64,000 nt of DNA, from contig NC_068995.1 of NCBI RefSeq assembly GCF_001194135.2, forward strand, positions 2,868,477 through 2,932,476. Reading direction: 5' to 3'. Under the pieces are notes generated by a model, which was not told the DNA's origin, ran no database searches, and saw only the letters and a list, made by a program, of their open reading frames with translations. The position numbers were made by a program, and so were the translations under genes. Positions 3,671-64,000 of this stretch are shown here, in pieces (positions within the stretch are counted from its first letter, which is position 1; every line of letters starts with the position of its first letter). This DNA is from Octopus bimaculoides (Eukaryota).

Positions 3671-3989
3671 GTGTGTATGTGAGTGAAAGATGGTCTCGGA
3701 GCAGCAGATCTACGGTGAAAACATGGTAAATACCTTTAAAAGCGTTTCGAGGCATTGCTGAAAATGAATAGTCGACGGATTGTGAATTTTTCCTTTGTAG
3801 TAGCATGAGTTCTTCAAGTGCGGAGCAAATGAATAGTTAAAGTCTGTTGCAGTGTCGTAGCGACAAGTGATGGTGGCTGTGTGTGTGTGTGTGTGTGTGT
3901 GTGTAGCAGTGGGGCAGTGTGTAGCAGTAAGTGTGTAGTAGCAGTGGGTCGTCGTCGCCGTCGTTGTTGTTTTCGATGTGTGGAAGCGA

Positions 3990-27825: not shown

Positions 27826-28556
27826 AATTTTAATTACGCCGCTTCTCTCCCAATTATACCTGAATCAGCGAACATCATTGGTTTACTCTACCTCTATTAT
27901 ATTTCCTGCTGGAAAAATGGGTCTTGTCTATTTTGACTACCACCGAAGTTCCATTCTTCAAGTCCATGTCATCACTTTGGATAGGAAGTTGTCCAATAAA
28001 ACGAATACCCTCATCTTTGCACAACTGGGCCCAGTCACTGCTGGCTTTCGCAACAGTATCTTGTAATAGCATATCTTTAGTCCAAGAATAAATGAAAATC
28101 ACTAATTGTGACAGATCCAGCTTAGATTTATCAAAGACCGAATCAGTTCTTATAGACTTCCTATTTTTACAACGGCTGCAGTACCACCTATATTTGTCTT
28201 CGCAACCTGTATATTTATTTACACCACATGGAATATTACATGTAGTGCATGTATATGTATTTCTAATCAATCGACGTTTGGCCAACCATTCCAAAATATC
28301 CAAAGAACCTGGATCACCAATTGACTTGGACAAAGAATTTAAGGTCCACTTTTCATCTCGGATTTCTGCATCTGTCAAAACTTGGTCGACAATTTTCAAT
28401 TTCTGCTTTGGACCTCTACGAGCCATGTTAAATGATTTGCTAATACAACTATTTTATTTCTCATCTTATGCACTGTATATCAGCTATTTTACAATTTGTT
28501 GTCCAATCTCATCTAAACTTTGGTAAAATGAAAGCAAAAACGGCGTAATTAAAATT
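27826..28556. repeat. 16-bp perfect inverted repeat bracketing the Merlin ORF
   Basis: AATTTTAATTACGCCG at 27826-27841 and CGGCGTAATTAAAATT at 28541-28556. Confidence 0.85.
27875..28426 (-). CDS. Merlin (IS1595/ISXO2-like) transposase N-terminal half, intact 183-aa ORF
   Basis: WLAKRRLI...CTTC...RWYCSRC...SIRTDSVFDKSKL zinc-ribbon region, then VVKIDKTHF..RKYNRGR (first catalytic Asp motif). Stops just before the QWVFG motif. Confidence 0.85.
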   Translation of the reverse strand: MARRGPKQKLKIVDQVLTDAEIRDEKWTLNSLSKSIGDPGSLDILEWLAKRRLIRNTYTCTTCNIPCGVNKYTGCEDKYRWYCSRCKNRKSIRTDSVFDKSKLDLSQLVIFIYSWTKDMLLQDTVAKASSDWAQLCKDEGIRFIGQLPIQSDDMDLKNGTSVVVKIDKTHFSSRKYNRGRVNQ

Positions 28557-34578: not shown

Positions 34579-37500
34579 ATTAACCGGTCAGTACAGTATG
34601 TGAGTCGTTAGTCTGCGGAAGTTAAAGCAAGTCACTGAGCATGCGTACATGTCATACGGGAGAGTTCCAATCAGGGGTGGATAACAACCTTATAGGAACC
34701 CCCTATAGTATCACAATCGGGCCTCTAGATCCGTAAGGCCTAAGTGTAACCATGCCTTAAGATGGCATTGGACATACACCCACCTTTCTAACCTCAGCAT
34801 ATCGGATCCTAGCTTACCCCTGGTACCCTGACAACCCAATATTGGATGGATTTTAAGAAAGACAGTAATGTGTCACGTATCACTTTTAATAATCCAAGGC
34901 CGTGTCGTGCCTCCAGATACAAATTAATTGTTGCGCAATATTTACAAAACAACCATTTTCGTATATATATATACACGAAATATTTTGAGGGATAGAAAAT
35001 CTGTTTTAAAATATACTTGCATTAAGCTCAGTGTGTGTGTGCAAGCAATGCACGAACAAAATGTCAGCTGGGCTCATTAGCCACCAGCGGACCCACAAGT
35101 GTAAAGTCGAAATTTGTCTAAGAGCATAAGGCTCTTAATGGTTAGTGATGGTCACGATTGGACAACCATTATATATATATATAAGCAATAACTACAGGGT
35201 TTTACCCCCCCCCCCCCCAGACTTTGCCATAACCTGCAGATGTTTCCTTCAAAATTCCTACATGCTCGAAATGTACATACATCAAGGTATATTTGTAGAA
35301 AATTTCACGAAAAAATATTAATTTTCATGGAAGTTAAGAATTTAAATGGACTCTGTTGGAATTTCCGAAAATTGTCCCCCACCCCCATTCCCAAACTCTT
35401 TCACCGAAAATTTTTGTATATTCGGAATCTACATAATAAATACAATTTGCATAGAAAATTTCATTAAAAAATATTCATTTTTCTGAAAGTTATGACCTTC
35501 CAAAGTCTGGGGGGTAGAACTCTGTAGTTATGCCTATATATATATATATATGTAAATATATGAACTCCAAACGTAAATCCGGAGGAAATACCGCTAAGCA
35601 TTTTGTCTAGCTCGCCGCCTTTATATATATATATATATATATATACATGCATACACACATATAGACACCCATCCATACATACACACGTCTCATTCAAACA
35701 CGTGCACACTCATACCCATTCAAGCAATCTTTCTATCTCACGCTCTTTCTTTTTATCCCCTCTCTCCCTCCCTCCTAACATGCACTCATTCATACACGAT
35801 ATCCTGCAATCACGTATTCTTCTTCTTCTTTCTCCCTCGATCACGCATTCATATACACTAATTCTTCACCTCCCTCCCTCTCACATACATTCACACTATC
35901 TCTCATTAACACACTCTTCTTTCTCTCTCTCTCTCTTATTCTCGATCATACATTCATTCATGAACATTTTGACTCACGTATTACCTCCTTTCTCTCTTTC
36001 TCTTTCTGTCTCATACGCATTCACTCGCATACCACCACTCACTCACAGACTCCCCCTCTCCCTTTCCCTCACACACATCCGTACCCACTATCACTCACAC
36101 TTACACTCACATATCCCCCCCTCTCTCTCTCCCTCTATCTTTATGTTGTAAATATTTTCAACAAGCCAGGTGTGATTATAACACCTGTCTGTGATGTTGT
36201 TACTAAGGATGAGAGAAATGTGACGTGAGAACAGTTCTCCGAGACTTTCATTCCACCATATTTTGAAATGTTGGTAACCTTGACCTACAAGAAATAGCAG
36301 TTAGATCTCCTCTAAATCACACCATAGTCACTTTTAGAAAGTTAACATCTGCAACACTTGATCATAGAACTGACCCAGGGTTAAACAATAGTGGTTTCAC
36401 ATTTTGGCACTAGGCCAGCAATTTCGGGGAAAGGAGAAAGTCGATTACATTGACCCTAGTACTCAACTGGGACTTATTTTATCGACCTCGAAAGGATGAA
36501 AGGCAAAGTCGACCTCGGCGAAATTTTAACTCAGAGTGTAAAAGACAGACGAAATGCCGCTAAGCATTTCGCCGGTTCGCCGTAGTTGTCTGCTAGAAAT
36601 AGCAGCTAAATCACATCTTACTATCTTTCAAAGGCTTACCTACTGTTCGATAGCCCACCTCGACTTTGTTCCCTAACATTTTTTTAAAAATACATATTTT
36701 TACCGAAATTCTGCAGATATACGCAGTTAAAATTGCATGGTGTAAAACTACATTAAACCCCTGTTTATGAGGAAAAACTACATCAATTTAGAGTGTTTAC
36801 GGTGTAAATCTGTGTTCGAAGCCTGCATTTATAATGTAAAACAATGTTAAAACACTTTCTGTATGAAACTGCTTGGAGATATTGCGTTTTGATGTAAAAC
36901 GACAATAAAACTGATATTTTAAAATATAATCTAGATTAAAACACTGCATTTATTAATATAAAACCAGATTAAATGGCATACCTACACAAGTGTGCCCTCA
37001 CCACGACTCTGTTTCCAGTTTTCAGAAAAGAAGGATATATTTTAATGATATTTTCTACAAATACGCTATAGATGCTGTAGATTCCGATTATATCGGAATT
37101 TGTTGTGAAAAGAATTTCCATGAGCGGGGACAGGGTTCCGGAAAATTCACTCGAGTCAGCTTTGTTTCCTCGTAATTTTCAGGAAAATGGGTAAATTTCA
37201 ATGAAATTTTCAAGAAATACCTTTCAGAGTGCGTAAATTACGATTATATCGGAATTTAATGTAAAACAAAATTTGTGCCAAAATTTAAAATCATTATTAA
37301 GCTGATGTTTGGAACATATATTGATATGAAATTTTGATGGAAGTTTTTAATTTAGATCACTTTAAACCTTTTGCTATCATACCTCTGTTGATATATACTG
37401 CTTTCACTTCAATTAATTTCGAAAATAATGAAGAGTTTTGTAAAACAATTTTGCCATTATAATAATGGCTGGTGTTTGAAACAACTTCAAATTTTGATGA

Positions 37501-39660: not shown

Positions 39661-42502
39661 CGACAAACACACATTCACTTGAGAATAGACTTCTGTAAGT
39701 GAAGGCTTCAGTATCTAACTCAGGTGAACCGTACAGGTTAAGGATAGAAATGCTTAGCCCCTTGAGATAACTAGCTAAAGGTACATGTTAGGGGTTTCCG
39801 GCATTGCCATAGCTTTAGTAACCACCAGGAAAAAAAGGTCACGATGTCTGGAAGTAGCACTTGCAGTTTCTCTGAAGATTGGCCAGAAAAACGACCTGAT
39901 TGAAAGCCGAAACGAGCAGTTGAAAATGTGAATATTTGAATAGATAAATACGATTATAAATAGAACTTTATAAAATAATTTAGGACATGTAGCAAGAAGA
40001 CCGTTATTTAAAATAAAGGAAATTCACAACTACAACCTCTTCCTCCTCCACCTTCTTCTACCGTCAGTGCTATCAACATAGCTACCACCATCACCACAGT
40101 AATTAACATTGATAAAAGTCGTAATGAGCTTCCATGAAGGTAATCGAGGAGTTATCTCCCATTAGCCAGCGAAACCTGTACAGCAGGTTTGCTTTCAAAG
40201 ACAATTTTGATTCTCTCTCCCTCTCTCTTCATTTTTATTCACTCCCTGCTCTTTCTCTTTGAAAGTTTTTTTTTTAATAAAGTTCTATATTTATCCATCA
40301 ATCAATGATATCTAGAAATATGTTTTAAACTTCGATTATTTTCAATAACAAGCTACCGTAATACATGGGATGAGAGAAATAGCTGTGTCTTGGATATTTT
40401 TTTGAAAAAAAACCCCCAAAAATCATGACTTAAAGCAGAAACAGTAGTGGCCATGACCCTGTTCAGAACTTCCAATACTCGTGGGACGAAGTTAACCCCA
40501 GAGAAGAGGTCTGACCTGAAAGCTTGCAATAAAACAGGACTCTATCAAAGGAAACCAAGAGCAATGTGGTTACAATGACTATAAGAACCGAAGGAAGTTG
40601 ACAAAACTAATTGCTTCGATCACAGATAACAAAACCACGCGTTTATGAAATAAATCGATTTCATTATTTGATTGTCATTAGGCTGCAAGCTGGCAGAATC
40701 CTCAGCACGCCGGACAAAATGTTAAGCGGCATTTCGTTCGTCTTTACGTTCTGAATTAAAATTCCTCTGAGGCCGACTTCGCCTTCCATCCTTTCGGAGT
40801 CGATAAAATAAATACTAGTTGAGTCCTGGGATCGATGTAATCGACTTACACCCTACCCACGAAACTGCTGGCCTTGTGTCAGAAATTGAAATAAAAATTA
40901 ATAGAACGGGAAATACAAAGATAACAAGATATAAACCCCGGACCCCCGTCAAGGCAACACCATAGCCCAACGTCCACAAGGGGCTAAATATAGAGGTTAC
41001 ATATTACAAAGACAATACAATTCTTTTTATCATTATTAGTGAACAATAACGTCGTTTGTCCAGAACCAATAACTGGTTCATTGCTTTTCTGCCGGTAAGA
41101 GTAAAGACAACATCGATGTAGACCAAATATCTTAAGGGACTTCTTTTGTAAAGCACCGGGTTTTAGGTTTCCTCGCCGATGTTTACACAATTCCTTCAAT
41201 TAACAATTTTTGTTTCCACTTGCAACGTATTGATTAATCCGAAGCTATGATAAAAGACACTTGCCCAAAGTGCCGCGTTGTAGGACCGAACCCGGAATCA
41301 CACAGTAGCTAAGCGAACTTCTTACCTTCACAGCCATGCTTTTACTGCTATTTCTAGCAGGTCGAATAGCCGGGTTAAGTTCCCTTTCATAAATGGAGAG
41401 AAGAAAATTTTTTGCTGTTGTTTTGAAAGGAATATTTCTACTCTCCAAACATACATTCTCACACACACATGCATTGTTTCTTTTCATACACTCACCTACA
41501 TTAATGTGCTCAGAAGGGATATTTCTACATTCGAACTACTCTCCACACATTCTCTCTCTGACACCCCGTCATACACACATATCGTCTCATATATTCTCTT
41601 TATCTTTCACACACATATTTTCTCATGTACGTACATATACTCTCTCTCATTCATACATTCTTTCAAATAGGGTCTCATACATACATTGTCACTCATACAC
41701 ATATCTGTCAGTCCCTCTCATATACATTGTCTTACACATATTGTCTCATATGCACACATTGTTTCTTATACACTCATTCATTTACTTTCTAACCCCTCTC
41801 TCTCTTTTTCACACTCCTGTAACGAAATACTATTTTAGTGAGTTTTCAGGGTTGACGGTTGAACGCTTTAAGAAACAAAAAACACCAAAATAAAAATAAA
41901 AATGGTTGGCTGGATTCCCCCGCACCCGTAAATAAATATTTATGTCTACAAAACAAGTGTATGCAACTACATTGAATTAGTTCTGCTTTCTTTATTTTAT
42001 TTTAGCCGACACAGGCCATCATTAATTCTGTTTTGTACTTCCTAGCAGCTGTGTGACCGGAAAACAACTGGGGCACCTAACAACAACAACAGGGAAGGCG
42101 AAAACACGTATGAGGGTAAAAGAGAGAGACAATAGTTTAATAAATAGGTGAACAAAAGACAACAAAAATACTAGTATTGTATTTTAACTTTGATTTTAAA
42201 CTTAACATAGAAGTTAGTTCTCCATTGAATTTTTACACTTTGTAGTTTATTAATATACAGTTATTTTCCTAGACTTTAACGTACTTTTTCAACGACATAA
42301 CAACCTGAGTTTATTTATTTTAACTGAGATTTCTTTCTCTCCACCTCGACCAGATTTTTACTTCCACTCAAAATCGTCTTTCCTTAAGATCGTGGCCGTT
42401 GTCTATCATGTTTGTGTATTATAAGTGTTGTAAAGACCATCACATGTACTCAGAATATTGAACATAATAAAAATTGTAAGACATTTGGGTACCCAGCCAG
42501 TC

Positions 42503-42793
42503 ATGGAAATCATAAAGAGTTCGTTGGGAGCAGATATGATCGTTTACAGAGAGTATATTTATAGAAAAGATAAAGCCAACTTGAATACCATGTACTGGCG
42601 ATGTGTTAAATCGAAATGTAAAGGGAGATTGGTGAGCATTCTGGATTATAAAGAAAAGGACGTGGAAGAAATTCAACTGAAGGTCAGGGGTCACCATTTT
42701 CATCCTCCTGATCCTTTGGATGTGAAGGCAAGGAAAGCATTAATTGAAGCGAAGTCAATTTTGAACTGCAACGAACTACCTAGAAACAAAAAG
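42503..42793 (+). CDS. FLYWCH zinc-finger coding exon A (97 codons, ATG to phase-0 donor)
   Basis: MEIIKSSLGADMIVYREYIY...YWRCVKSKCKGRL...GHHFHPP; C-x4-C and HxH intact; AAG|GTAATC after 42793; ORF tail beyond the donor is low complexity. Confidence 0.8.
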
Positions 42794-45099
42794 GTAATCA
42801 TTATTCGATTTAACCATTGTTTTAATTTTTTTTTAGCAAAAAAAACAAAACTTTCGAAATATAATTACAGCTTCAAAATGATGTTTATTTATTTTGTCTT
42901 TATTTCCAAAACATTTTTTTTTATTTATAAAGTATATATTTAATAGCTGAGTATGTATATCTGATAGACACACTCTCAACTATCTATTTCTCTCTCTCTA
43001 TTAGCCTGTCTGCCGGTCTAGTCGGGAGAAAGTTACAAAAGTGACTCTGGGGCCAACATTTTCGTCCAACCGACTTTGAATCTGAGTTTGTTTCTTTTTT
43101 ATCGATCGAATCATATATATATTCTTTTGCTGTTGGTGGACTGCAGCCTTCCTATGGAACCTAGTGACTTCTATAGTTTGAAACCAAGTATATCGATCTG
43201 TATTTGTAGAACCGTTAGTTGGACAACACCGATTTGTTTTTAAAAACCCTTGTAAACATTAACTAACCAGGTACGCGCGCGCACACATCACACATATTTT
43301 CAATACTTTTTTTTTTTACATATATGTCATCTGTTAAATTCCAGTCAACAACCTGAGGCTCATTATAGTTGAGTAGAGCCCCGTGTAAAATGTCGCGCAG
43401 TGAGATCGAACCTCAAATCTCAGTGCTGCAAAGCGAACTTTGTAACTAAACGGCCTAACGAATACGTGGAGTATATTATTTATCTTTTACTTGTTTCAGT
43501 CATTAGACTGCGGCCATGCTGGAGTACCGCCTTCAAGAATTTCTTGTCGACTCCAGTACTTATTCTATCGGTCATTTATGCCGAACAGTTAAGTTACGGG
43601 AACATTACCGGTTGTCAAGCGGCGTCGGGGGGTGGGTAGAGGACACACACAGAGCCAATCTTGCGGAGAAAGTTCATGAAAATGAAACTATTTGTTCGGT
43701 AATTTCCGACATACATGCACAAAAAAACTCCCATACTTACATACGCTAAGAATACAATAACAAGCGGTTCAAGTGAAAACAAAAGTTAAAGAAATAAAAT
43801 TTTTTACGGAAATTGCTGAACAAACACTTTCACTTTTCATGGTCTTTCTCCAAAAGAATGCCATATATATACATATAGAGAGAGAGAAGAGCGGACATAA
43901 CAAACAGAGAGAGAGATGAAATTTACTTACCATATCTATCTATCTGCTTGTCTATCTCTCCATATCTCTGTCCGTCCGTCCATCCATCTATCTATCTATC
44001 TATCTATCACACAAGTGTGCTCTCTTCCCCGATTTTGTTTCCTTACAATTTTCTGAAAAAAATGGGTATTTTTAATGAAATACCATTCTGACTGCATAAA
44101 TTATACGATTATATCGGAATTTAATGTGAAAAAAAAAATGTTGGGCGCACACACGTACATACTGTTATACTTTTCATATACATTACAAAATAAAGCTTGA
44201 TATTCTGAACACATTATGTGTGTTTTAGTATGTATGTGTGTACACCAACCTGTTTTGTTTTTTCATTATGATCGTAATCTATACACACGCACACATATGA
44301 AGTCTGTTTTTCGGCCATCGTCTCGTCACTTGTTGCGATTATTTCCTTTAGGAGGTTTCCCAATTTCTTGAAATCAGCGCTCTTCGTCCACTTTTCCCTT
44401 ATATTTTCCCATGTCTCTTCCTATTTTGCAGGTTCCTTCCATTGGAATCACTTGCCAATTCTTTTACCCAGCTTTACCCCGTTCTATACACATCACATGT
44501 CAGAACCAGTGCAGTCTTCTCTCATGCACGTTACATCTGATTCCACGAGCCAACGCGGTAGCCTGTATATTAGTCACTCGACGCGCTAGAAACAGCAGCC
44601 AAATCTCTCTCAAATTAACATCCTAAAAGATCGAACATCTTGATTATTGGAGTCTTGGGTTCCTTGCTTATAGGAAAAATACAGAATGGTCACGGTTGGA
44701 ATGTCTTTGATCAATGGTTCAATCAGGGCCTACATGAGACTATATAAACAATATCAACATTCGATTCCTCTAATATTTAGTCTTTCCCTGACCCGTTATT
44801 CACCTTCTCTGTAATGTCACCGTACAAGAAATACAGATATAATCGCATGTAACCCTTTCTCTCACAGATATCCTATCCATCAGAATAATCGAATTTGTTT
44901 CCACCTTAAATAATTCCAATCTCGTGGAAACATGCCATATGTAGTAACAATATCTTTTCTTTCTGAAACGATTTGTTTTAATTCCTTTTGTTATTCAAGG
45001 TCTGCGATATCTGCTCCTGTATCAGTTATTATTAAATCAACATCTTTATTAACAGAGTTTTAAATATCATTCAGAACAGATGGATTGACGTAGCTTCCT

Positions 45100-45290
45100 A
45101 AATGAGGAACAGCCTGATGACCCCAAGAATGTCCTTTTTACATTCATTATAAATAAGAGAACATTTACGTGGTAAATATTCTTTTAAACCCATTTTAACG
45201 TTCTCGATTATTCTGCCAGTATTTCCATTTGATTGTGGATGATATATAGAGGTGTTTTCGTAGGTCTACACCCAGTTTTAACGAAGCCAG
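45100..45290 (-). mobile_element. LTR-retrotransposon (Gypsy-like) integrase fragment
   Basis: Minus frame TSIYHPQSNGNTGRIIENVKMGLK matches the integrase YHPQSNG motif; flanked by stops. Confidence 0.6.
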
Positions 45291-45337
45291 ATGCTCGAGT
45301 TTATTATTTATGTAATTCACAGACATTGTCAAGAAGT

Positions 45338-45600
45338 CCGCCAACTTATCGCCGCCAATTCAGTGCGGAGTCAAGTTATCGGTAAACTAACTCATCGCCT
45401 CAATTAACTTACTTTAAAAATTGAAATTCATAGAAGTGAAATGGAATTGAAAAAAAAACCCTTTATTTAAAGAAATGGAATGTTAATTAAAATACCTTAT
45501 TTTACTAAAGTGTATATGTTTAAATCAGTGGTTCGCTACTAATTCATCGCCGCCAATTCATCGCGAGCCAAGTCCTCGCTCACCAACTCATCACCGAACT
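45338..45600 (+). repeat. Short direct repeats (CCAA(C/T)TCATCGC-like), Mutator-type subterminal array
   Basis: ccaacttatcgccgccaattc, ctaactcatcgcc, aattcatcgccgccaattcatcgc and ccaactcatcacc upstream of FLYWCH exon B. Confidence 0.55.
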
Positions 45601-45786
45601 ACTTCAGTATCAAACCAAATAATTACTAAGCAGACTAAATTAGCAAATTACAAGTCAGCTAATTATTAATTTAAATGTGACAGCGTTTACTTATTTACTG
45701 TTCGACGCTGGCAACTTCGGTTCATGCAATTAATTTAGAACTGTTTGAGCTACGATTGCTTAAATTTTTCAAGGAGGCCCTTCACA

Positions 45787-46095
45787 ATGGAACGTGTTTT
45801 CAGTCAGCGAGGCAAAGAGAAGTTCTCACACAATGGCTATTTGTTTATATTTGATAAATTTAGTAGGACCGACACTGACTTAATGTTTTGGCGTTGTGAA
45901 TTAATCGGCAGATGCAAAGCAAGAATTCACACAAAATTTGGCGATGTTGTGAAATTTATGAATACTCACACACATGATTGTTCACCAATAAGGGAAGTAG
46001 TAAAAATGGTCAGAAAATTGAAAAGCTGCTCTCGAAAGTCACTGGAAGGTCCAAATATAGTAATTGACGAAACATTGGGCAGTGTTTTCCGACCG
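45787..46095 (+). CDS. FLYWCH zinc-finger coding exon B (103 codons, ATG to phase-0 donor)
   Basis: MERVFSQRGKEKFSHNGYLFIFDK...FWRCELIGRCKARIH...NTHTHD; CCG|GTAAGC after 46095; possible acceptor tttttcAG-like aag| at 45773. Confidence 0.85.
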
Positions 46096-47023
46096 GTAAG
46101 CACTTCAAATAAGCATTTTTCCTTCTATATTTCTATGTATATAATAATAATTCTTTCTAATTTCGGCTCAAGGCCAGCAATTTTGAGGGAAAGAGAAAGT
46201 CAGTTATATCGATCCCAGCGTTAAGCTGGTACTTCATTTTATCGACCCGAAAGGCAAACGTTGATTTCGGCAGGATTTGAACTCAGAGCGTAGAGAGCCA
46301 GAAGAAATGCTGCTAAGTTCTTGTGTCGGATGCGCTAACAGTTCTGTCAGCTCACTGTCTTACTAATATTTTTTAATAGCAATTAAACATTTTGATGGAA
46401 TAAATTAAATGCGTGGAAATTGAACCGCTATGTTAAATTAAGGCACTGTGGCTCTCCGTTTTCATACACAAAATGCTCTAAGAATGTCCTTTCTGAATGA
46501 AATACAGTTCTTCCGTAGCTCCTTAACTCTTTCTCTTTCTTTATTCTTATTAATTCACCCACAGTATCAGTAGCGTAGCTTGGGGTAGAGCGAGCCGCCC
46601 CTGGGAAGAAACAATTTTTGGGTCTACTGTATAAACGCCTATATAGGCTCGTGAACCCGGGAGTAGGGGCTGGGTTCTTAAACTATAGGGCTTCCCCGGC
46701 GGCACATGCCACATCATTGCATAGTATACGTCAACAAATATTAACAGTACTTCTAAATTCTTGACATAAACATGATCAATGGACGCATGTATCCATTCTT
46801 CATCATCATCATCACCATCATTTAACGTCTGCTTTCCATGCTGGCATGGGTTGGACGGTTTGACAGGAGCTTGCAAGCCAGTGGATCGTGCTAGGTTTTA
46901 CTATCTGCTTTGGCATGGCTTCTATGGCTGGGCGCCTTTCCTGATGCCAATCCCTTTACAGAATGTACTGGGTGCTTTTTACGTGACACTAGAATCAGCA
47001 GTAGCAAGGTCACCAGGTAACTT

Positions 47024-50443: not shown

Positions 50444-50803
50444 ATGGATAACAACGTTTCATACATCGCAAGTATCAGAGGCAAGGAAAAAGCTTGCAAC
50501 AATGGCTATGTTTATGGGTTTGACAAGAAAAGCAAGAAAGACGACCAGCTCTTCTTTTACCTCTGCGAGAGACAAAGATACGAGCAATGTCCATCGAGAA
50601 TCCATGTAAAACATGACACGGTGGTGAAACGCATGCATCAACATAACCATGCTCCAAATCGATCAAGGAAAAAAACCTTGAAAATAGCTTCTGAGATCAA
50701 AGATCATGCGGCCACTTCCGCGGAACCGTTCATAAATACCATCATAGCAGACAGGACAACTCATATACCAGCCTCTGTTGCAGCAGCAGTAATTATACCA
50801 AAT
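50444..50803 (+). CDS. FLYWCH zinc-finger coding exon C (120 codons, ATG to phase-0 donor)
   Basis: MDNNVSYIASIRGKEKACNNGYVYGFDK...FYLCERQRYEQCPSRIH...HQHNHAP; AAT|GTAGGT after 50803 (alternative phase-1 donor 4 nt later); acceptor tttgcttccAG| at 50384 with an in-frame stop (50423-25) before the ATG. Confidence 0.85.
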
Positions 50804-50866
50804 GTAGGTACTCTGTTTACTTTGCCTGTTCATTCACACAGATACAAAATACTATATATATGTAAA

Positions 50867-50901
<35 letters not shown>

Positions 50902-51035
50902 ATGTAATGTCTTTTTGTTGATATAGACACACGTACGCAGATGTGTTTATATACATACATGTACCTGTGCGGCTGTAATGGTCTGTCTTGGCTGGGATAT
51001 CGATCGCTGGGAAAAGCGGCTGGGAAATGCGTTAC

Positions 51036-52429: not shown

Positions 52430-52830
52430 TTATGACTGGTTGATAACAAGTTGGGGTAGTTGACAGAAGATTGAGAAAGATGATTGAAGACTGAGGTAGG
52501 TGACATTGTAGTAGATGACATATTGTGGTTGATGATTATATTGTGTTAGATGCCTGGAGATTGAGGCTGGTGACAGAAGATTGAAGTAGATGATAGAGAA
52601 TTGGGATAAATAACTGAAGATTGAGGTAGATGACTGAAGATTGACTTAGTTGACAAAAGATTAAAGTAGAAGACTGAAGAATGAGATAGTTAACAGAAGA
52701 TTGAGCTAGATGACAGAAGATTGAGGTAGATGACTGAAGATTGTGGTAGATAGCAGAAAATTGTGGTAGATGACAGAAAATCGAGGTAGGTGACTGACAA
52801 TTGTTGTAGATGACTGAAGATTGAGATTGA
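52430..52830. repeat. Minisatellite of ~20-nt unit (TGACTGAAGATTGAGGTAGA)
   Basis: Many degenerate tandem copies between the two mini-exons. Confidence 0.9.
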
Positions 52831-54945: not shown

Positions 54946-55589
54946 GTTATATATGTAATGACTTCAAATTTTGGCACAAAGCCAGCAAGTTTGGAGAGGG
55001 GATAAGTCGATTACATCGACCTCAGTATGCAACTGGTACTTATTTTATCAAACCTCAAAAGAATTAAAGGCAAAGTCAACCTCGGCAGAATTAGAACTCA
55101 AAATGTGAAGACGGACAAAATGCTACCAAGCATTTTACTTGGCATTCTAATGATTCTTTTCTACTCTAGGCACAAGGCCCGAAATTTTCGAGGGAGCCCT
55201 AAACACTTAAAAGGGTGGCCTCATGTATATGAAATTCAAACTATAAAAACCATAAGATAAATTATTAAACACATTGATTAAATTTATTAGGCGAATATTA
55301 ACAATATTCAGTCGCATTAAGTATGGTTACTCACATACATTATAAAGTACACGTAATTACATAACAGCACTGACGTACGAACACGCACGCACGCTTAATG
55401 CACGTTGTTTTTCAACTTCATTCATCTTTTAAATGATTAATATTGAAATTAAAACAAAGATATTTTAATCCGAAGAAACTTCGTTGGGTTCTGTGAATGA
55501 ATATCTCTGCTGAAATATCGAACACATTGGGACAAGAAACAACTTCACGAAATATATAAACATTTGAAAGTTTATAATAACTTCGACAT

Positions 55590-55945
55590 ACCCTCGTAAA
55601 AGAGTTTGATTTCCCCATAGCTTCCAGAAAAATGGATATTTGTAATGAAATTTTCTACAAATTCCTTCTAGATAATGTGGATTAAGATTATGTCGGAATT
55701 TAACGCAAAAAACAATTGAGGGCGCGCACACATCAGTACTGACAAACACCACCTACCTTAAAATGAAACTTGAAATTTTGAAAAAAATTATGTGATTTGT
55801 TTCTGTGTAATGTGTGCGCGCTCAGTATTATATTTTTTTTTACATTAAATTCCAATATAATCGTAATCTATACGACCAGAAAGTTACTTGTACAAAATTT
55901 CATTAAAAAATATGAAATTTTCTGAAAGTTATGAGGCAAAAAAGC
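55590..55945. repeat. Palindromic arrangement of a dispersed MITE-like family
   Basis: aatgaaattttctacaaa...ggaatttaa...gcgcgcacacat is mirrored by atgtgtgcgcgc...ttaaattcc...aaaatttcatt; related pieces near 35240, 37050, 44030 and 58990. Confidence 0.55.
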
Positions 55946-56640
55946 CAGGGCGGCACAGTTGTGTTGGTATGCTGTAAATCGTTCGGTCAGCTACGTTTGT
56001 GAAAGTCCTTCTGTCGTCGTTCGCGATCCCTTCATTGACATGCTCGCTTTACTCCAAGTCGGTCTCCTAGTTTATAAGTTCTGTATTTAAATTTATATGG
56101 ACGTGATTGAGAAATCCTCCTGAGATACAACAAAATGTATTTCAACGCACGGATCTTGCAAAACCAAATACAAAAACCTAAATATTTGAAAAATAAGGAA
56201 AAATAAAATAAAAATATGACCTGATGGTTACGTGTGAAAATCTGGTAGGAATCGAAACCTTTACGTCGAGTACTTGCTTTTTTGGTATGTATTGTATTTT
56301 ATAAGCTTACTACACTCACAATAGAATATCGTCTTGGATAGAGAGACAAATGCAGAGATACGAGAGGAGGTATGTTGGTTCTTAAAACGATCGTTTGACA
56401 GTGACTTTACAATGACAGAGTGTAGCTGTCATTTTTACTGACTGATCGATTTGCCTTGTCACACAGCAGCCAGTCACAAATACACGTAATTAAGTTCACA
56501 GCCTTCCTCGTTTACAGCTACAATATGTCATGACGATTTGCTGTCATCTCATTCGTTCATTGATTAAATTTTTAATAATAAACAACCTTTGTTTTCCCTT
56601 CTTTTGCCAACCAATTTACTTTGTAATCATTTGACACATG

Positions 56641-56690
56641 TGCGTCATTACGCGAGCTGTTACTCACGTGATTCGGCTCCTCCAATCAGA
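56641..56690 (+). promoter_or_regulatory. Candidate proximal promoter of the DUF3504 exon
   Basis: TGCGTCA (56641-47), E-box TCACGTGA (56664-71) and CCAAT (56682-86) clustered 50-95 nt upstream of the ATG at 56736. Confidence 0.45.
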
Positions 56691-56735
56691 TGCAGGAGTT
56701 TGATATACGACAGTTTCTCGGAAATTTTGGTGATC

Positions 56736-57950
56736 ATGTCGGATGTAGCTGACTCAAAGCCATTATCGTCTTCACTCACGCAATCCTTTATGAATGACTT
56801 CAACGCTGATATTGTTAGCGGAACCAAAAGCGATAAAAATGTTCTGTTAGTTGCAGATGACCCTCCTCCTGCAATGAATTCTATAAACTTCATAAACCTA
56901 GACGAATGTAGCCAGCTGGCAGGTTCGAGGAACACTAAACGGGTCACCGCCAGTTCTGTTAAATTGTTTCGAGCCTTTTTAAAGGAGACCAATAATGGAA
57001 GGACTGATTTTGAAAATTTTGATGAAGAACTCCTTATCAGTCATTTGATAACTTTTTTTAAGCGGGTAAGAAAGCCAGATGGTGATCTGTATACGAAGAA
57101 TGGTTTGCTGTCGATTCGTTTCGGACTAAGAAGGCGCTTGTTAGACTTACGTAAAGTCGATATTACTAAGCACCCTCGCCTTAATTCAGTTTTTACTGCT
57201 CAGATCAATAAATTGAAACGAGAAGGAAAAGGAGATATAAACCATTATCCTCCCATTAGTCAGGATGACATGTTCAAAATTTATAGTTCAGGGATTTTGT
57301 CACCCGACACGCCAAAAGGGTTGTTAAGGAAGATTTTCTTTGAGACTGAAATGTTTTTTTGTCGACGAAGTAGAGAAAACCTAAGGGATTTGAAAGGAAG
57401 TCACTTTAAAATTGAAACCGACGATCAGGGCAAAATATATTTGACCACAGATTTTGATCCATCGTTTGGTGGTGGACCAATCAAACGGATTTATGAAACT
57501 GGCACAGACATATGTCCAGTGAAAGCCTTTCGGAAGTTTTTGCTGAAACGTCATTCTGGCTGTGAGGCGTTATTTCAACGTCCCGTGGATATAATTCCGT
57601 TTTCTGAACAGGATCCTTGGTTTTATTGTTCAGCTCTCGGCCTCAATAAACTCGCCAACATGATGAGAGAAATTTCTTCAGAAGCGTGCCTATCCAAGAT
57701 ATATACAAATCATTCCATAAGAGCTACCTCAAAATCGGTCTTTGATCTCGTCTGGAACGGACTCTTCTCGCAGAACTCACCGAATACAATAGCACCTGCC
57801 TCTAGTGATGTCAGCAATATTAGTGACATAACTTCTGTTTCAATGGAGAAGCCAAAGCAACGATCATCATCATCTCAAGGAAATGAAACTGATATCGATT
57901 TGAAATCGAACTTAGACATACAAGAAATTGAAAGGAAACACGTCCCTGTG
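56736..57950 (+). CDS. Crypton-derived tyrosine-recombinase-like (DUF3504, ZMYM/QRICH1/KCTD1-like) coding exon, 405 codons to phase-0 donor
   Basis: NTKRVT.SSVKLF..FL, FFKRVRKPDGDLY, LLRKIFF....FCRRSRENLRDL, CPVKAF..FL, WF....LGLNKL..MM, YTNHSIRATS; then a Ser-rich linker and GTG|GTGAGT after 57950; no stops. Confidence 0.85.
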
Positions 57951-59233
57951 GTGAGTTCTTCATTAATACTCATCTTTATAAAACAGACCTCCATCTCTAC
58001 TTCTTCACCTGTTGGACCTTATTTCTCTTCCACTGTCCTCCAGTCTTTTATGACTCTTGCTCGTCGTAAATTAAGTGATGTCACAAATTTAGTCGGGAGC
58101 TGCTTAACTGACATTGATAGACCGATAACAAAAGCAGTCTTAAGACAGAGTCACTCAGATATAACTGGGTGTGACTTAAAGGAGATTAAGCTACTATTTC
58201 TAGCAGATTGAGCGACCACTACACTCTTTGACTCGAGTATAGTGATGTATAGAGTGATGCGAAGTTGCGGCTATTATGCCTTTCCGTAATCCTTACTACA
58301 AACAATAACTATAACATGTAATGTGCCCACACTCTGGCGTATACCAGCCAATGTTTCATTTGAGTAAGGTGAAGGGTTCCATATATGTTGCCGTTGTTTA
58401 GCCCAAGGTCAACTTCACTGAGGCAACCTGTAATCAGCGTCTTTCCGACTGTGACAATCTCGTCTTTTTACTTAAAACGAAATTCAGCCAGTGTATCGAG
58501 GGTAAACCCTACCATCTTAAGGGAGGGGGGAGGATCTATTTGTTTTCTTTAAAACAGTGAGGATATAATCTGAAGATGAGTTGACTATTATTTCTAGCAG
58601 GTCGAGTGTCTACGTAGAGGGTCGACCTGCAAGAAATTGGGTGTTTAGTGGTATAAAAAAAGTGTGGGTTGTATTGTGATAGGAGGGTGGGCGATATCGG
58701 TGTGCGAAGGCCCTATTTATTGTTGTTGGGAGGAGTGGTGGTGTTCAGCTCCGCCAAGTCAACCCTGATCGAGCAGACTTTTTACCAAAGGCATTTCAAA
58801 CGTGACCATCCCGTCTTTCTTAAATACAGGCAACCGAAGACGTCATCTAACGGAGCCAGTTTAAAGATGAAGGCGTGATTTGAGGGAGATTTAGTTGCTA
58901 TTTCTAGCAGATCTAGCTACAACGAATAGATGTCCTTTGGACCGAGTGTAGGGATGTATAGGAAAGAGGTATTACCTACACAAGTGTGCTCCCCACCGAC
59001 TTTGTTTCCTCTTAACTTCCAGAAAAATGGATGTTGTTTAATGAAATTTTCTACAAATATGTTTCAGATGGTATAGTTTTTGATTCCATCGGAATTTGTT
59101 GTTAAAAAAGTTTTTCCGATGGTAGGGAGATGAGTTTCGGAAAATACACAAGAGTTGGCTCTGTTTTCTCATAACTTTACGAAAAATGGATATTTTTTAA
59201 TGAAATTTTCAATAAATGCTTTCCAGATGGTAT

Positions 59234-59876
59234 NNNNNNNNNNNNNNNNNNNNNNNNNNNNNNNNNNNNNNNNNNNNNNNNNNNNNNNNNNNNNNNNNNN
59301 NNNNNNNNNNNNNNNNNNNNNNNNNNNNNNNNNNNNNNNNNNNNNNNNNNNNNNNNNNNNNNNNNNNNNNNNNNNNNNNNNNNNNNNNNNNNNNNNNNNN
59401 NNNNNNNNNNNNNNNNNNNNNNNNNNNNNNNNNNNNNNNNNNNNNNNNNNNNNNNNNNNNNNNNNNNNNNNNNNNNNNNNNNNNNNNNNNNNNNNNNNNN
59501 NNNNNNNNNNNNNNNNNNNNNNNNNNNNNNNNNNNNNNNNNNNNNNNNNNNNNNNNNNNNNNNNNNNNNNNNNNNNNNNNNNNNNNNNNNNNNNNNNNNN
59601 NNNNNNNNNNNNNNNNNNNNNNNNNNNNNNNNNNNNNNNNNNNNNNNNNNNNNNNNNNNNNNNNNNNNNNNNNNNNNNNNNNNNNNNNNNNNNNNNNNNN
59701 NNNNNNNNNNNNNNNNNNNNNNNNNNNNNNNNNNNNNNNNNNNNNNNNNNNNNNNNNNNNNNNNNNNNNNNNNNNNNNNNNNNNNNNNNNNNNNNNNNNN
59801 NNNNNNNNNNNNNNNNNNNNNNNNNNNNNNNNNNNNNNNNNNNNNNNNNNNNNNNNNNNNNNNNNNNNNNNNNNNN
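59234..59876. other. Assembly gap (largest; others at 17577-17659, 33111-33236, 49452-49596, 51571-51580)
   Basis: Runs of N. Confidence 1.
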
Positions 59877-59949
59877 CCCCCCCCCCCAAGTTACGAGAAA
59901 GTAAACAAACATACGTGCGCGCACATAGACGCACACACGTAGTAAATAC

Positions 59950-60105
59950 AACGGGCTTCTTTCAGTTTCCGTCTACCAAATGTACTCACAAGGCTTTGGT
60001 CGGTTCGTGGCTATAGTAGAAGACACGAGCCCAAGATGCCACGCAGTGGGACTAAACGTGGAACCATGTGGTTGGGAAGCAAACTTCTTTCCACACTTCT
60101 TACTA
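59950..60105 (-). mobile_element. tRNA-derived SINE
   Basis: Same family as 8104 and 39505. Confidence 0.8.
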
Positions 60106-61074
60106 TAGCAGACCAGAGCCTTGGCGCGCGTGAATTGTTTTTTGTTATCTTTATTCCAACAATGGAGTTATGTATTTTTCTTAGAAACCAAATCCTTCCT
60201 CGGAGGAACAATTTAAATAATCTAAAACAGAAGGGAACAGGCAAATGCAATACTTTATTTCAGGGTTATCTCCCCTGCTCCACTTTATCAGAATTAATCA
60301 CAACACTAACGATTTTTTTCTCCTCATTACAAATGTAATTTTTTAAATGAATATATTAACGATTCTTGGCTCACTACATTATCTATGTTAACACCCACTT
60401 TACTGTTTGTTTTTCATACAAAAGGGAGACCCTGAGTACTTCTCCCCCTCTTCCCTTTCTCTCTCTTTCAGCCTTATTCGTTGTTTATAAAGAAAAGAAT
60501 AGTCTTACCATGTCTAGAAATTGCGTGTTACAGCAATATAGTGGTGGTGGTGGTGGTGGTGGTGGGGTACACACCACACTGCTGTGAATACAGAAGTGGT
60601 TGCTGTGTGTGTGTGTGTGTTTACTGGTTCTACCTAGACTCTCTAGTGTGAGTATCTAAGATCCACCCTCCCTCCAACATATACTCTAATACTCTGCATG
60701 ACTCAACATGACCAGCTGACAATAGGTGAAACCTAAGATCTTGATGTGATGTCCTACTTACCACACACAGTGTGTGTATGAGAGAGAGATAGAGGGACTG
60801 TATACATCTTTACTCTAAGCATGTGTATCGTATAACTTTTGAAGAAAGAAAACACTGTGTGTGTGTATCTGTGCACCCCCCCCCCACCACACACACATAA
60901 GCACAAGCAGACACACAAACACACATATCATATATCTTTGGTAGATCTTAACAGACAGTTCATCACTAGTTTTCCAGATGCTGTATTCCAATAATAATAT
61001 CACCCGATATATTTATTTATCAATAAATATCATTATAGATATTATTTTAATATATATTGATAAAATAAGGTAGC

Positions 61075-61410
61075 GAGCTGGCAGAAACGTTAGCAGGCCG
61101 GGTGAAATGCTTAGCGGTATGCCATCTGTCTTTGCCTTCTGAGTTCAAATTCTGCCGAGGTTGACTTTTCCTTTCATCCTTTCTGGGTTGATAAATTAAG
61201 TACCAGTTGCGTACTGGGTCGATCTAATTTGTTACCCACAAACACACATATACACAGCAAGCTTCTTTCAGTTTCTGTCTACCAGATCCACTCACAAGGC
61301 TTTGGTCAGCCCTGGGGCTGTAGTAGAAGTCATTTGCCCAAGGTGCTGTGCAGTGGGACTGAACCCAAGACCACATGTTTGGGAAGCAAGCTTCTTCACC
61401 ACACAGCAAT
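61075..61410. mobile_element. Two adjacent SINEs of different families
   Basis: ctggcagaaacgttagca...tctgagttcaaattc (+) followed by ggcttctttcagtttc...cttcaccacacagc (-). Confidence 0.8.
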
Positions 61411-62505
61411 ACCTGTGCCTGAACTAACTGATCAACTGCATGAGAGATGACTGTGTCCAACTTTGCAGAATGGTAGTTCAAATATGCCAGTGGCGTATTT
61501 GGAAAACAAGCCATTTACTGTGTTTTGTCATGGAGAAAATTTCTCGCTGCTTAGCGCTTCCACCCCACAATATTAGGTTCTGTTACAAGGGCCTGGACGT
61601 CCACAGTCTTTATGCTCCCCAAACGACGGAACTTCTATTGGTTGCTCGACATGCTAGAAATAACAGCCACTACTCCCTCATCATGCCCCGTCATCTTAAA
61701 AATATAATGTAGTCCTAGATACACTACGCCTGCCAGAAAGAAAATGAAAAGGAAAAAGCGAGAGAGTCGTGACTAGAACGCCTTTGGTCATTGATCTGTT
61801 CGATCAGAACTGACCAGGAGCCAAACGGCAGCATGGCCCTCGTTTTGGCTTCAGTAGTCTCATTGTGTTGGTCATTTCGTTGGAGAAAACGGGAGAAAAG
61901 ATAACGTTCTTGACCGTCTGCGCGGCTGTCCCCGCCATTCCTGGTGTGAACCTAAAGCTTTTCATGACTTATCTCAGAGATTCCTTTAGGAAAGGCACCA
62001 ACACCTATAACTCCTACTAAAAACATCGCCTTAGAAGATGACAGTAATAATAATCCTTTCTACTGTAGGCACAAGGCCTGAAATTTTAAGGGCGAGGGGC
62101 TAGTCGATTATATCGATCCTAGTACTTAACTGGTACCTGTTTTATCGACCGTGAAAGAATAAAAGGCAAAGTCGACCTCAGTGGAGATTGAACTCAGAAT
62201 GTAAAGCATTTCGCCCAGCGTGTTAACGATTCCACCAGATCGCCGCCTTAGAAGATGACATCAATTATGATCACAGCAGTAATATGTAAATGAAAGTCTA
62301 ACCTCTGTTCCGAGTTCAAATCCTGCTGAAGTCGACTCTTATCCTTCCGGGACAGGTGGTGGTTTAGCAGAAACATTGTTTCGACTCCTTGCGTTCTGAG
62401 TTCAAATCCCACCCTCATACTATTTGGGTGGTCACCTTAACCTGTTACCTCGTTTAATAGCAGAGCCTACTTTTCATACCAAGCATTCGAGTCAGGCTTC
62501 GGCGT

Positions 62506-62832
62506 TTAACCCTTTCACTGCACAATTAAATTTCTTGGTCCTTCCCGTTATGGTGTTATCTACCCCCAAAATAGAATTGCTGGGTACAGTTTTCATATCC
62601 TTCGCTTTAAGTATTTGATTCGTGCTCTGTAAAGAAATATTTAATGAAATATGTGGAAAAAGAAAAAAAAGAAAATTTAAAAAATTGTCTTTAGTAAAAA
62701 TGAGGATTTCTCTGCTCCTTGCAGCATAAGGAAAGGAGCTTTTAGAAAGCTTTTGGGTTAAAACCGTTTTCCGCATTTACCGGTAATAACATTTTGAGCG
62801 GAATATTTCTGCTTTCCACATTCAAAGGGTTA
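62506..62832. mobile_element. piggyBac-like MITE
   Basis: TTAA-CCCTTT at the left and AAAGGG-TTAA at the right; coordinates approximate. Confidence 0.5.
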
Positions 62833-63469
62833 AAGATACTTTCTTCCTATTTTGCTACCAGTTTCAGAGACCCTGTAAAATGTCAACGGCAACTTGCCTT
62901 TTCCTCTTGACTAAAAGATGAAAAAACAAACAAACAAAACCCCCAATGGTTCACAGAATTTAATTTTGTCCCTGTCCGTCTCGAGTTAAAATCCTGGCCG
63001 TCGATAACCCCTTCTTTTCTCGGTGTCCGGGTGAGTTGATGAAACCGACTATACGCCGCCTCTCATCATATTCTCGGTTCTGTACCAGTGGGAGAAACCA
63101 ATGTATTGACTGGTACCAGAATATGAAATGGATAAAGTTGCCAGGGAGTCAAACCAGCGACACAGTTTCGAACTCCGACTGGAATAGTTTCTCTTCAGTT
63201 AGTCCCTTACTTAACTCGTTGGAAGAGCCATGAACATCACAACACCCTCTTTATCATTTCGTATAGTAGTAACACAACATTGGTTTCTTTTTTTTTTTCT
63301 TTCTATTCTTTGTTTGTTTGATGAATTGAATTCGGTCTTGCCAGGATTCGAACTCGAATCTGGGAGAGACTAAGTTATTGTAATGAGTTTTAGTCCAACG
63401 CTCTGATGTCACAACTGCCTCAGCTTGCTTCTATTTATATTAGAAATTGTTAGCATTATTTGATTGTTT

Positions 63470-63670
63470 TATTAACACCGCCTCCATCCACCACCACCAC
63501 CGTCATTATTATCATTACCATCCCCACCACCGTCACAACCATCATCAACACCACCATTGTTGTTATTATTATTATTATTACTACCACTGTTAGTATTTTT
63601 ATTACCACCACCACAACCACCGCCATCATCACCATCATCATCATCACCATTAACAAGTCGACAGTCTATA
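63470..63670. repeat. Trinucleotide low-complexity tract (ACC/ATC/ATT)
   Basis: Mixed triplet runs; explains the T/I/V/G-rich ORFs here. Confidence 0.9.
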
Positions 63671-64000
63671 ACAACAAATATGGCAGCTGGTATTGAAGGT
63701 TTTGTTGTTCTGTTTTGCTTTGTGTGTGTTTTTCTTTTATTTTCCTTCATCTGAAAGGAATTCTGATGCTATCATATTTGACTAATATAGTCAGTCTGGT
63801 AACATTGTTATTTTGCTAACAATGTGAGGTTTTTCGCCTTGATTTTGTTGTTGCTGTTGTTAACAACACCACCGCCACCACCACCGTAACTACTACTATT
63901 ACCACCACCACGTAGTAATAGTAGTTGTGGTGGTAGTAGTAATAGTGGCAGAGCATTGTAACTTTTAATTGTTCTCTAACAAAGCACTTGGTATTCCCCC

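Follow-up and report, generated by a model that had tools for sequence, protein, structure and literature searches.

The domestication of Cryptons has been documented for a handful of families, namely, WOC/ZMYM/QRICH1, KCTD1b, KIAA1958, and some fungal genes. In vertebrates, isoform b of KCTD1 carries an N-terminal DUF3504 domain encoded by a single exon, which derives from a Crypton inserted upstream of a BTB gene (Kojima and Jurka 2011, PMC3212892). QRICH1, another carrier of the domain, is part of the QRICH1-SEPHS1 coregulator "Zincore" (PDB 9hjt; Bianchi et al. 2025, as cited in PMC13538652). Here, we analyzed a 64-kb stretch of the genome of Octopus bimaculoides (contig NC_068995.1, positions 2,868,477 to 2,932,476; the whole stretch is called the window, and positions are counted from its first letter). 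It contains an open reading frame (ORF) of Crypton type around positions 56,641 to 57,950. We consider it probable, rather than assured, that this locus holds a domesticated Crypton module that is non-catalytic, has a promoter of its own, and would serve as a 5' exon spliced at position 57950.

Coding exon, fold, and active site

The ORF occupies 56589..58211 of the + strand, and its first ATG is at 56736. From this ATG to the stop at 58209-58211, it has 491 codons. Since an ORF of this length has a probability of ~1e-14 or less in DNA of 39% GC, the open frame is not due to chance. The context of the start, ATG(T/G)CGGAT, is conserved between the window and its relatives, and the linker closing the predicted exon runs up to a boundary that reads CCT GTG|GTGAGT (57950|57951). 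The 405 open codons with the CRRSRENLR and NHSIR motifs, which an earlier note on this DNA had described, were confirmed. The coding features are as follows:

56736..57950, + strand: coding exon from the ATG to the predicted splice donor, 405 codons, delimited by the ORF, its homologues, and the start context kept in relatives
56736..56876, + strand: N-terminal 47 residues, fast-evolving and predicted to be disordered (predicted local distance difference test [pLDDT] of <50; ratio of nonsynonymous to synonymous divergence [dN/dS] of ~0.9 between the relatives' contigs L001 and L002)
56877..57770, + strand: two-domain tyrosine-recombinase-like core, residues 48-345, with a helical domain resembling core-binding domains and a domain of catalytic type ending with the HxxR helix (pLDDT of >90, Foldseek matches, and nonsynonymous versus synonymous differences)
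57360..57386, + strand: CRRSRENLR, residues 209-217, retaining Arg-I (R213) and the acidic E214 (near-invariant R/E columns in a 62-sequence alignment)
57450..57488, + strand: degenerate beta-hairpin DFDPSFGGGPIKR (alignment columns; pLDDT dips to 61)
57708..57722, + strand: NHSIR, residues 325-329, the HxxR box with H326 and R329 retained, which opens the last helix, 325-345 (N325 and H326 invariant, R329 nearly so)
57771..57950, + strand: Ser/Asn-rich linker, residues 346-405, predicted to be disordered and standing in place of the GH/Tyr helices (pLDDT of ~40, tail profile, and dN/dS of ~0.9 in relatives)

An exhaustive HMMER search over 1.84 billion cluster representatives (of ~15 billion proteins) retrieved 3266 related clusters (each built at 50% identity), 195 of them at E values of ≤1e-30; most of the closest have an SGH...Y tail. 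The window protein matched Crypton/DUF3504 proteins at E values from 1e-45 to 1e-136. Two close relatives are present in this large protein collection, P0001 (69% identity) and P0002 (66%), and the cluster of P0001 is the only one with >50% identity to the window protein. Seven further relatives at 34-40% identity carry PF12012 and/or PF00589. The phmmer matches at E values from 1e-30 to 1e-45 are likewise annotated with PF12012/PF00589, which establishes the homology to DUF3504 transitively, despite the sub-threshold Pfam score given below. The Pfam QRICH1 domain also scored below threshold (14.6 bits). Named members of the family come from corals, Exaiptasia, amphioxus, and a brittle star, and the sequence matches place the window protein in the CryptonA/DUF3504 family (PMC3212892; PMC13465315). 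The window protein, P0001, and P0002 grouped together in 40/40 neighbor-joining bootstraps, in a tree that did not resolve their sister group. A scan of JGI metagenomes for members of this clade returned only 41-residue fragments of 50% identity.

The structure was predicted by AlphaFold2 from the 62-sequence alignment, with a predicted template modeling (TM) score of 0.69. The pLDDT exceeded 90 over residues ~60-345, and residues 1-54 and 348-405 were predicted to be disordered. A sequence search of the PDB with the window protein gave no match. With Foldseek, the best PDB match of the model was QRICH1 in the Zincore-ZFP91-DNA complex (9hjt_H, E value of 6e-8), followed by dozens of Cre-loxP chains (TM scores of 0.61-0.68, normalized to the target) and then by lambda Int, XerA, IntI, and Flp; all 46 PDB matches at E values of ≤1e-3 were recombinases or QRICH1. 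As modeled, the window product has the tyrosine-recombinase fold of the Cre/lambda Int/XerD superfamily, with its two-domain, C-shaped architecture.

A complete active site in this superfamily comprises Arg-I, Glu/Asp, the hairpin Lys, His-II, Arg-II, His/Trp-III, and the Tyr nucleophile, and helices L, M, and N of Cre carry the Tyr and mediate subunit exchange. In the window protein, R213, E214, H326, and R329 lie in conserved alignment columns. Where the family has DELTKNH, with the hairpin lysine, the window reads DFDPSFGG and P0001 and P0002 read DLECGP, and the hairpin segment of the window is ~13 residues shorter than that of its closest relatives. When aligned to the Tyr-bearing relatives, the window has no counterpart of the SGH...Y segment, the full tail (R)HIMxVSGHxxExSxxSY being present in at least 66 of the best 150 relatives. 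A profile of 66 tails scored -0.3 bits against the C terminus of the window protein including the read-through sequence past the donor, while shuffled controls reached up to 8.1 bits; the read-through peptide ("...GPYFSS...ARRKLSDV...") was for this reason rejected as a remnant of the Tyr tail. The Tyr-bearing P0003, modeled likewise, shows three more helices after the HxxR helix (320-327, 332-339 with Y338, and 344-359). The ordered part of the window model ends at the HxxR helix, 325-345, with none of these three.

With its hairpin lysine, second histidine, and nucleophilic tyrosine gone, and three helices missing from the C terminus, the protein, as read from the alignment and the model, cannot be a working recombinase and cannot cleave or rejoin DNA. 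The linker in place of these helices is of low complexity, with 12 Ser among its 60 residues. The same catalytic losses are found in P0001 and P0002, and since the three proteins share them and group in all bootstraps, the loss of the tail predates their split and has been followed by long purifying selection. These alignments and the tail profile bear out the claim of the earlier note that a Ser-rich linker replaces the GH...Y segment. Its description of the unit as intact, of Crypton/DUF3504 type, and devoid of the catalytic tail is supported by the homology, by the AlphaFold2 and Foldseek results, and by the census of residues. Such a loss of catalytic residues from an ORF that stays intact is taken as a mark of domestication.

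Related loci, selection, and the upstream block

P0002 is encoded on a 237-kb ENA contig (L001), and P0001 and its mates in the 90%-identity cluster are encoded on Logan contigs of several runs (L002-L008, L010, and L011). L002, L003, and L011 are mutually 88-90% identical over their entire lengths, and L001 is ~84% identical to L003 and L011 in three blocks and unalignable between these blocks. Given this identity of 84-90%, the collinearity, and the conserved neighbors, we take the relatives' loci as orthologous loci of related species. The coding DNA of the window is only ~67% identical to that of L001 and L002. In the core (residues 47-345), the Nei-Gojobori method gave a dN of 0.067, a dS of 0.434, and a dN/dS of 0.155 between L001 and L002. 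The proportions of nonsynonymous (pN) and synonymous (pS) differences between the window and L001/L002 were 0.16-0.17 and 0.85-0.88, respectively, the latter being saturated. These estimates indicate that the core is under strong purifying selection, which would act at the host level because the relatives' loci are collinear orthologues.

Conservation is also found just upstream of the ATG, where the following elements were identified:

56629..56649, + strand: 21-nucleotide (nt) element ATTTGACACATGTGCGTCATT, 100% identical in the window and all the relative loci L001-L008, L010, and L011
56660..56671, + strand: E-box block TTACTCACGTGA (CACGTG at 56665-56670; TCACGTGA type), with 11/12 positions kept with respect to L001 and L002
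56682..56686, + strand: CCAAT box (CCAATCAG), aligned with CCAAT in L001, L002, and L003
56704..56712, + strand: TATACGACA element, unchanged across the three aligned sequences and lying 24 nt ahead of the ATG

The 21-mer holds CACATGTG and TGCGTCA (56635-56647), and its core TGACACATGTGCGTCA is nearly palindromic. Each locus has the 21-mer once, always ~105-125 nt upstream of the ATG, and none would be expected by chance in the window; the exact match between the window and L001/L002 spans 22 nt (56628-56649). The 16-mer core is found once per locus, upstream of the DUF3504 exon only, and nowhere else in the window even at ≤3 mismatches. The E-box block reads TTA(C/A)TCACGTGA in the three-way alignment. 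Of the 107 positions compared between the 21-mer and the ATG, 78-79 agree with the relatives (shuffles, 67.9 ± 2.5; maximum, 75), whereas the 107 nt ahead of these agree at only 68, a random level, and the three-way alignment shows no conservation further upstream or in the first 47 codons. The cluster of E-box, CCAAT, and CRE-like (cAMP response element) motifs that had been noted upstream is thus present, and relatives with saturated synonymous sites have kept it. The block may act as a promoter, and by consensus only, its E-box (TCACGTGA type) and CCAAT box (CCAATCAG) fit common sites of basic helix-loop-helix leucine zipper proteins and of NF-Y, respectively. In the speculative reading of a variable-first-exon locus given below, the 21-mer could be a promoter-choice element or an autoregulatory site of the module. 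An element so sharply conserved offers a handle on how a transposon gene gains host regulation.

It is very improbable that the ORF is part of a Crypton transposon, be it a non-autonomous copy or one active now or until recently, and that its conservation reflects selection on an element family instead of a host gene. The family is dominated by Tyr-bearing multicopy elements, such as coral clusters of 33-124 members; the region of the window is rich in repeats, with repeats resembling miniature inverted-repeat transposable elements (MITEs) flanking the ORF; and no orthologue was found in a species ~85% identical in nearby DNA. However, the window and both relatives lack the lysine motif, the histidine of GH, the tyrosine, and the three helices, which makes catalysis of transposition impossible. 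Moreover, the copy is single in the window, one cluster alone exceeds 50% identity among the representatives of ~15 billion proteins, and the relatives lie at one collinear locus per sample, with the low dN/dS given above. Finally, the repeats on either side of the ORF are members of a dispersed family:

55600-55960 and 58980-59235: MITE-like, partly palindromic repeats of ~330 nt, inverted around the ORF
35250-35515, 36986-37274, and 44058-44240: further members of the same family

Two inverted repeats of 119 nt within the first pair (55835-55953 and 58991-59109) were considered as ends of an element and rejected, as the same family also occurs at 35.3, 37.0, and 44.1 kb. For the same reason, the MITE-like repeats are not specific to the Crypton unit.

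The region after the donor is made mostly of repeats. Dispersed repeats resembling short interspersed nuclear elements, 77-91% identical to each other, are found at 59943-60089 and 61249-61396 and at 55023-55190, 61083-61218, and 62054-62206. Minisatellites occupy 52547-52825 and 3374-3674, with a 20-nt unit present ~14 times and an array of 31-, 110-, and 141-nt periodicity.

Predicted exon end, neighboring ORFs, and readings of the locus

The predicted end of the exon is marked by two features:

57951..57956, + strand: predicted phase-0 splice donor GTG|GTGAGT, the sole GTRAGT in the ORF, at a position matched in relatives
57951..58211, + strand: in-frame read-through of 86 codons plus stop, not conserved according to the frame analysis and to the differing relatives, and either intronic or an alternative C terminus

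L001 (at 11288) and L002 (at 2959) have a single GAG|GTAAGT each, in phase 0. In all loci, the GTRAGT lies 75-80 residues after the arginine of HxxR, although the linker itself is unalignable between the window and the relatives. The alignability of L001 with L002 and L003 ends 8 nt past GTAAGT. The relatives read through just 10-49 codons, and the resulting peptides are mutually unrelated, with stops at different places. With hexamer, phase, and spacing all kept, a real exon end at 57950 is favored. Use as an N-terminal (5') exon, as the earlier note had proposed, is plausible from the sequence, since the sole GTRAGT shares its phase and its spacing of 75-80 residues with the relatives' donor.

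The same domesticated, dead Crypton gene might instead be a single-exon gene of 491 residues reaching 58211, with a donor that is unused or sometimes used and a fast-evolving, disordered C terminus. We regard this as unlikely, although it deserves appreciable weight. The 86 open codons past 57950 (P of ~0.005 from local composition), which the earlier note had overlooked and where the other frames have 12 and 7 stops, allow a single-exon protein or an intron-retaining isoform; the relatives also show read-through; the search for a partner exon found none; and one GTRAGT per 1.5 kb is near the chance expectation of ~0.7. Against it stand the lack of relationship between the read-through sequences of the relatives, whose stops differ, and the alignability of L001 and L003, which stops within 8 nt of GTAAGT, yet the equally fast-evolving tail before it aligns. 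Also, the window and its relatives share the hexamer, the phase, and the spacing to HxxR, although the linker around the site is not conserved.

In the relatives, two ORFs on the same strand follow the orthologous exon:

L001 13167-13760, L003 4428-4961, and L011 3959-4492: CENP-B_N/HTH_Tnp_Tc5 ORF (helix-turn-helix [HTH] ORF) of 177-197 amino acids (aa)
L001 15896-17071, L003 7184-8380, and L011 6675-7859: second DUF3504 ORF, of 391-398 aa, without GH...Y

These ORFs bear on whether the exon is the first part of a split but complete recombinase, in which the next exon supplies His/Tyr and the spliced protein is catalytically competent, the reading to which we give the least credence. A strong phase-0 donor does follow the HxxR helix and linker, and both a 643-nt run of N (59234-59876) and the sequence beyond 64000 are unread. 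Nevertheless, tblastn with nine homologues and the tail profile found nothing tail-like in the window. The 6.6-10 kb downstream in the relatives hold only the HTH ORF and the second DUF3504 ORF, the latter with its own ATG and no GH...Y, so that a tail-coding exon was found neither in the window nor downstream in the relatives. In addition, the motif of the hairpin lysine was lost within the DUF3504 exon itself.

The HTH and second DUF3504 ORFs of the relatives have their own ATG each, with conserved noncoding sequence ahead, and TATAAAT lies ~115 nt upstream of the HTH ORF. They end at conserved phase-0 donors (DQ|GTATGT or DM|GTAAGT in the HTH ORF; LQ|GTAGGT in the second DUF3504 ORF) and are under purifying selection (dN/dS of 0.096 and 0.086, respectively). 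They could be alternative first exons or, counting the DUF3504 exon, three separate domesticated genes. A common origin of the window clade with the second DUF3504 ORF, or with the DUF3504-BTB protein P0034 described below, was considered and has no support in the tree. More speculatively, and in our view with rather little likelihood, the exon might belong, as a single unit, to a "variable first exon" locus, in which transposase-derived binding modules splice to shared constant exons, as in the protocadherin and UGT1A clusters. This idea comes from the three tandem same-strand ORFs of the relatives, each with its own ATG, upstream block, phase-0 donor, and purifying selection, and from three FLYWCH ORFs upstream of the exon in the window, two of which have donor-like sites. 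If it were true, the targeting module of one effector protein would be swapped.

The three FLYWCH zinc-finger ORFs are in tandem on the same strand as the exon (42458-42943, 45745-46224, and 50444-50902, +; 37-48 bits in Pfam), and the donor-like sites of two of them are in phase 0, ~117-120 codons in. The middle one has a 106-aa counterpart of 91% identity on Logan contigs L012-L015, which are 85% identical to window positions 44780-46183. This counterpart stops 3 codons past a conserved CCG|GTAAGC, which suggests, at the sequence level, an exon end at 46095 in the middle ORF. Elsewhere in the window, 27875-28426 (-) encodes a Cys-rich, transposase-like, ATG-initiated ORF of 183 aa with no Pfam match and no homologue among 5.8 billion proteins. 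Matches of tblastn at 13069-13233 (-) had E values of 0.2-0.4 and a translation without recognizable motif and were taken as chance. Rfam and tRNA scans of the window gave no match.

In the reading that we prefer, that of a domesticated module used as a 5' exon, the locus would be a host-retained derivative of a CryptonA-type tyrosine-recombinase gene, encoding a Cre-like two-domain clamp fold that keeps R213, E214, H326, and R329. Transcription would start from a compact promoter made of the 21-mer, the TCACGTGA E-box, CCAAT, and TATACGACA within 110 nt of the ATG. The 405-codon ORF would probably be a 5' coding exon, joined in phase 0 at 57950, through the disordered linker, to exons outside the window. 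Its product is most likely a DNA- or chromatin-associated, non-catalytic binding module, as are the DUF3504 domains of QRICH1, ZMYM, and KCTD1b.

Several observations weigh against this reading. The score of Pfam DUF3504 (PF12012) is 23.3 bits (E value of 7e-5), covers residues 182-233 only, and does not reach the gathering threshold of 29.7. No orthologue of >69% identity was found in the protein collection, although the species that is ~85% identical in nearby DNA is represented there; its orthologue may be absent, unassembled, or unsequenced. The count of one Crypton-like coding sequence, with no second found by tblastn of nine homologues, covers the 64-kb window only. The neighboring HTH and second DUF3504 ORFs of the relatives are absent from the window. 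The collinearity of L001, L003, and L011 goes along with their low dN/dS in the core, while in the window a pN of 0.17 against a saturated pS stands without visible synteny with these loci. The frame stays open past the donor, and 57951-64000, with its run of N, yielded no partner exon, either by tblastn with the BTB-containing P0034 and P0206, by tblastx against the relatives' loci, or in the ORF listing of 59900-64000. The transcription start, the expression, and the use of the donor are putative. Finally, the sole RNA-like contig over a relative's locus, L010 (Logan SRR8281683), lacks L003 2836-5494 (2659 nt) and is spliced in antisense. A sense-strand splice was rejected in this case, as the junction is CT..AC on the + strand, which corresponds to GTAAGT...TTGCAG on the minus strand. 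L010 thus gives no support for the sense donor, and judging from this junction, it is a spliced antisense transcript crossing the DUF3504 exon in a related species.

Comparison with known Crypton derivatives

Taken as it stands, the locus is a clean but ordinary instance of something already known, the domestication of transposons. It adds a lineage of its own, clearly bounded, from which one can read the timing of the catalytic loss, since R, E, H, and R are kept and K, H, Y, and three helices are gone. With respect to the CryptonA transposons of animals and the fungal Glomhoppers (PMC13465315), which are homologues at 30-43% identity over ~290 residues, the window protein shows the same two-domain fold and the R..E and YTNHxIR boxes. 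Unlike it, these elements are multicopy and carry TKNH, SGH, and Tyr; the window lacks all three motifs and has one copy in its 64 kb.

The DUF3504 domains of QRICH1, ZMYM2-4, and WOC also have a non-catalytic recombinase fold, which is used in the regulation of chromatin and transcription, and the QRICH1 domain in Zincore may be the nearest characterized functional analogue. These domains differ from the window in that they lie C-terminal to other domains, share only ~12% identity with it, and have lost the His and the second Arg, both kept in the window; no SEPHS1 or zinc-finger partner is known for the window protein.

A similar layout is that of P0034 and P0206 (813-862 aa, from transcript-like Logan contigs), where an N-terminal, tail-less DUF3504 is followed by BTB (PF00651). 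They share 38% identity with the window over 302 residues, are truncated at the same point, and have a similar pattern (RATxKxVxxxV[FW]) after HxxR, followed by a low-complexity linker. Yet, they are not sister to the window clade (2/40 bootstraps), their 5' region lacks the 16-mer element, and nothing matching their BTB part was found in the window or at the loci of the relatives. In many other relatives, DUF3504 is at the N terminus of longer proteins.

A direct precedent is KCTD1b. The window clade is a different lineage, isolated in the tree; no BTB or other partner exon was found for the window exon; and the window keeps the second Arg (R329), whose counterpart was lost in KCTD1 (PMC3212892). 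In both, however, the recombinase-like domain is confined to one large 5' coding exon (a probable one in the window), with a putative start of its own and presumed splicing to host exons, and the catalytic tyrosine has been lost while the conserved histidine is kept. The earlier note had listed KCTD1 among the proteins with DUF3504 downstream of host domains, which is wrong, since the DUF3504 of KCTD1b is N-terminal (PMC3212892). The orientation, which it called unusual, is not so, because KCTD1b and the DUF3504-BTB transcript represented by P0034 share this layout. If the donor at 57950 is used, the octopus locus would be a second, independent case of the route taken by KCTD1b, from a Crypton to a new 5' exon.

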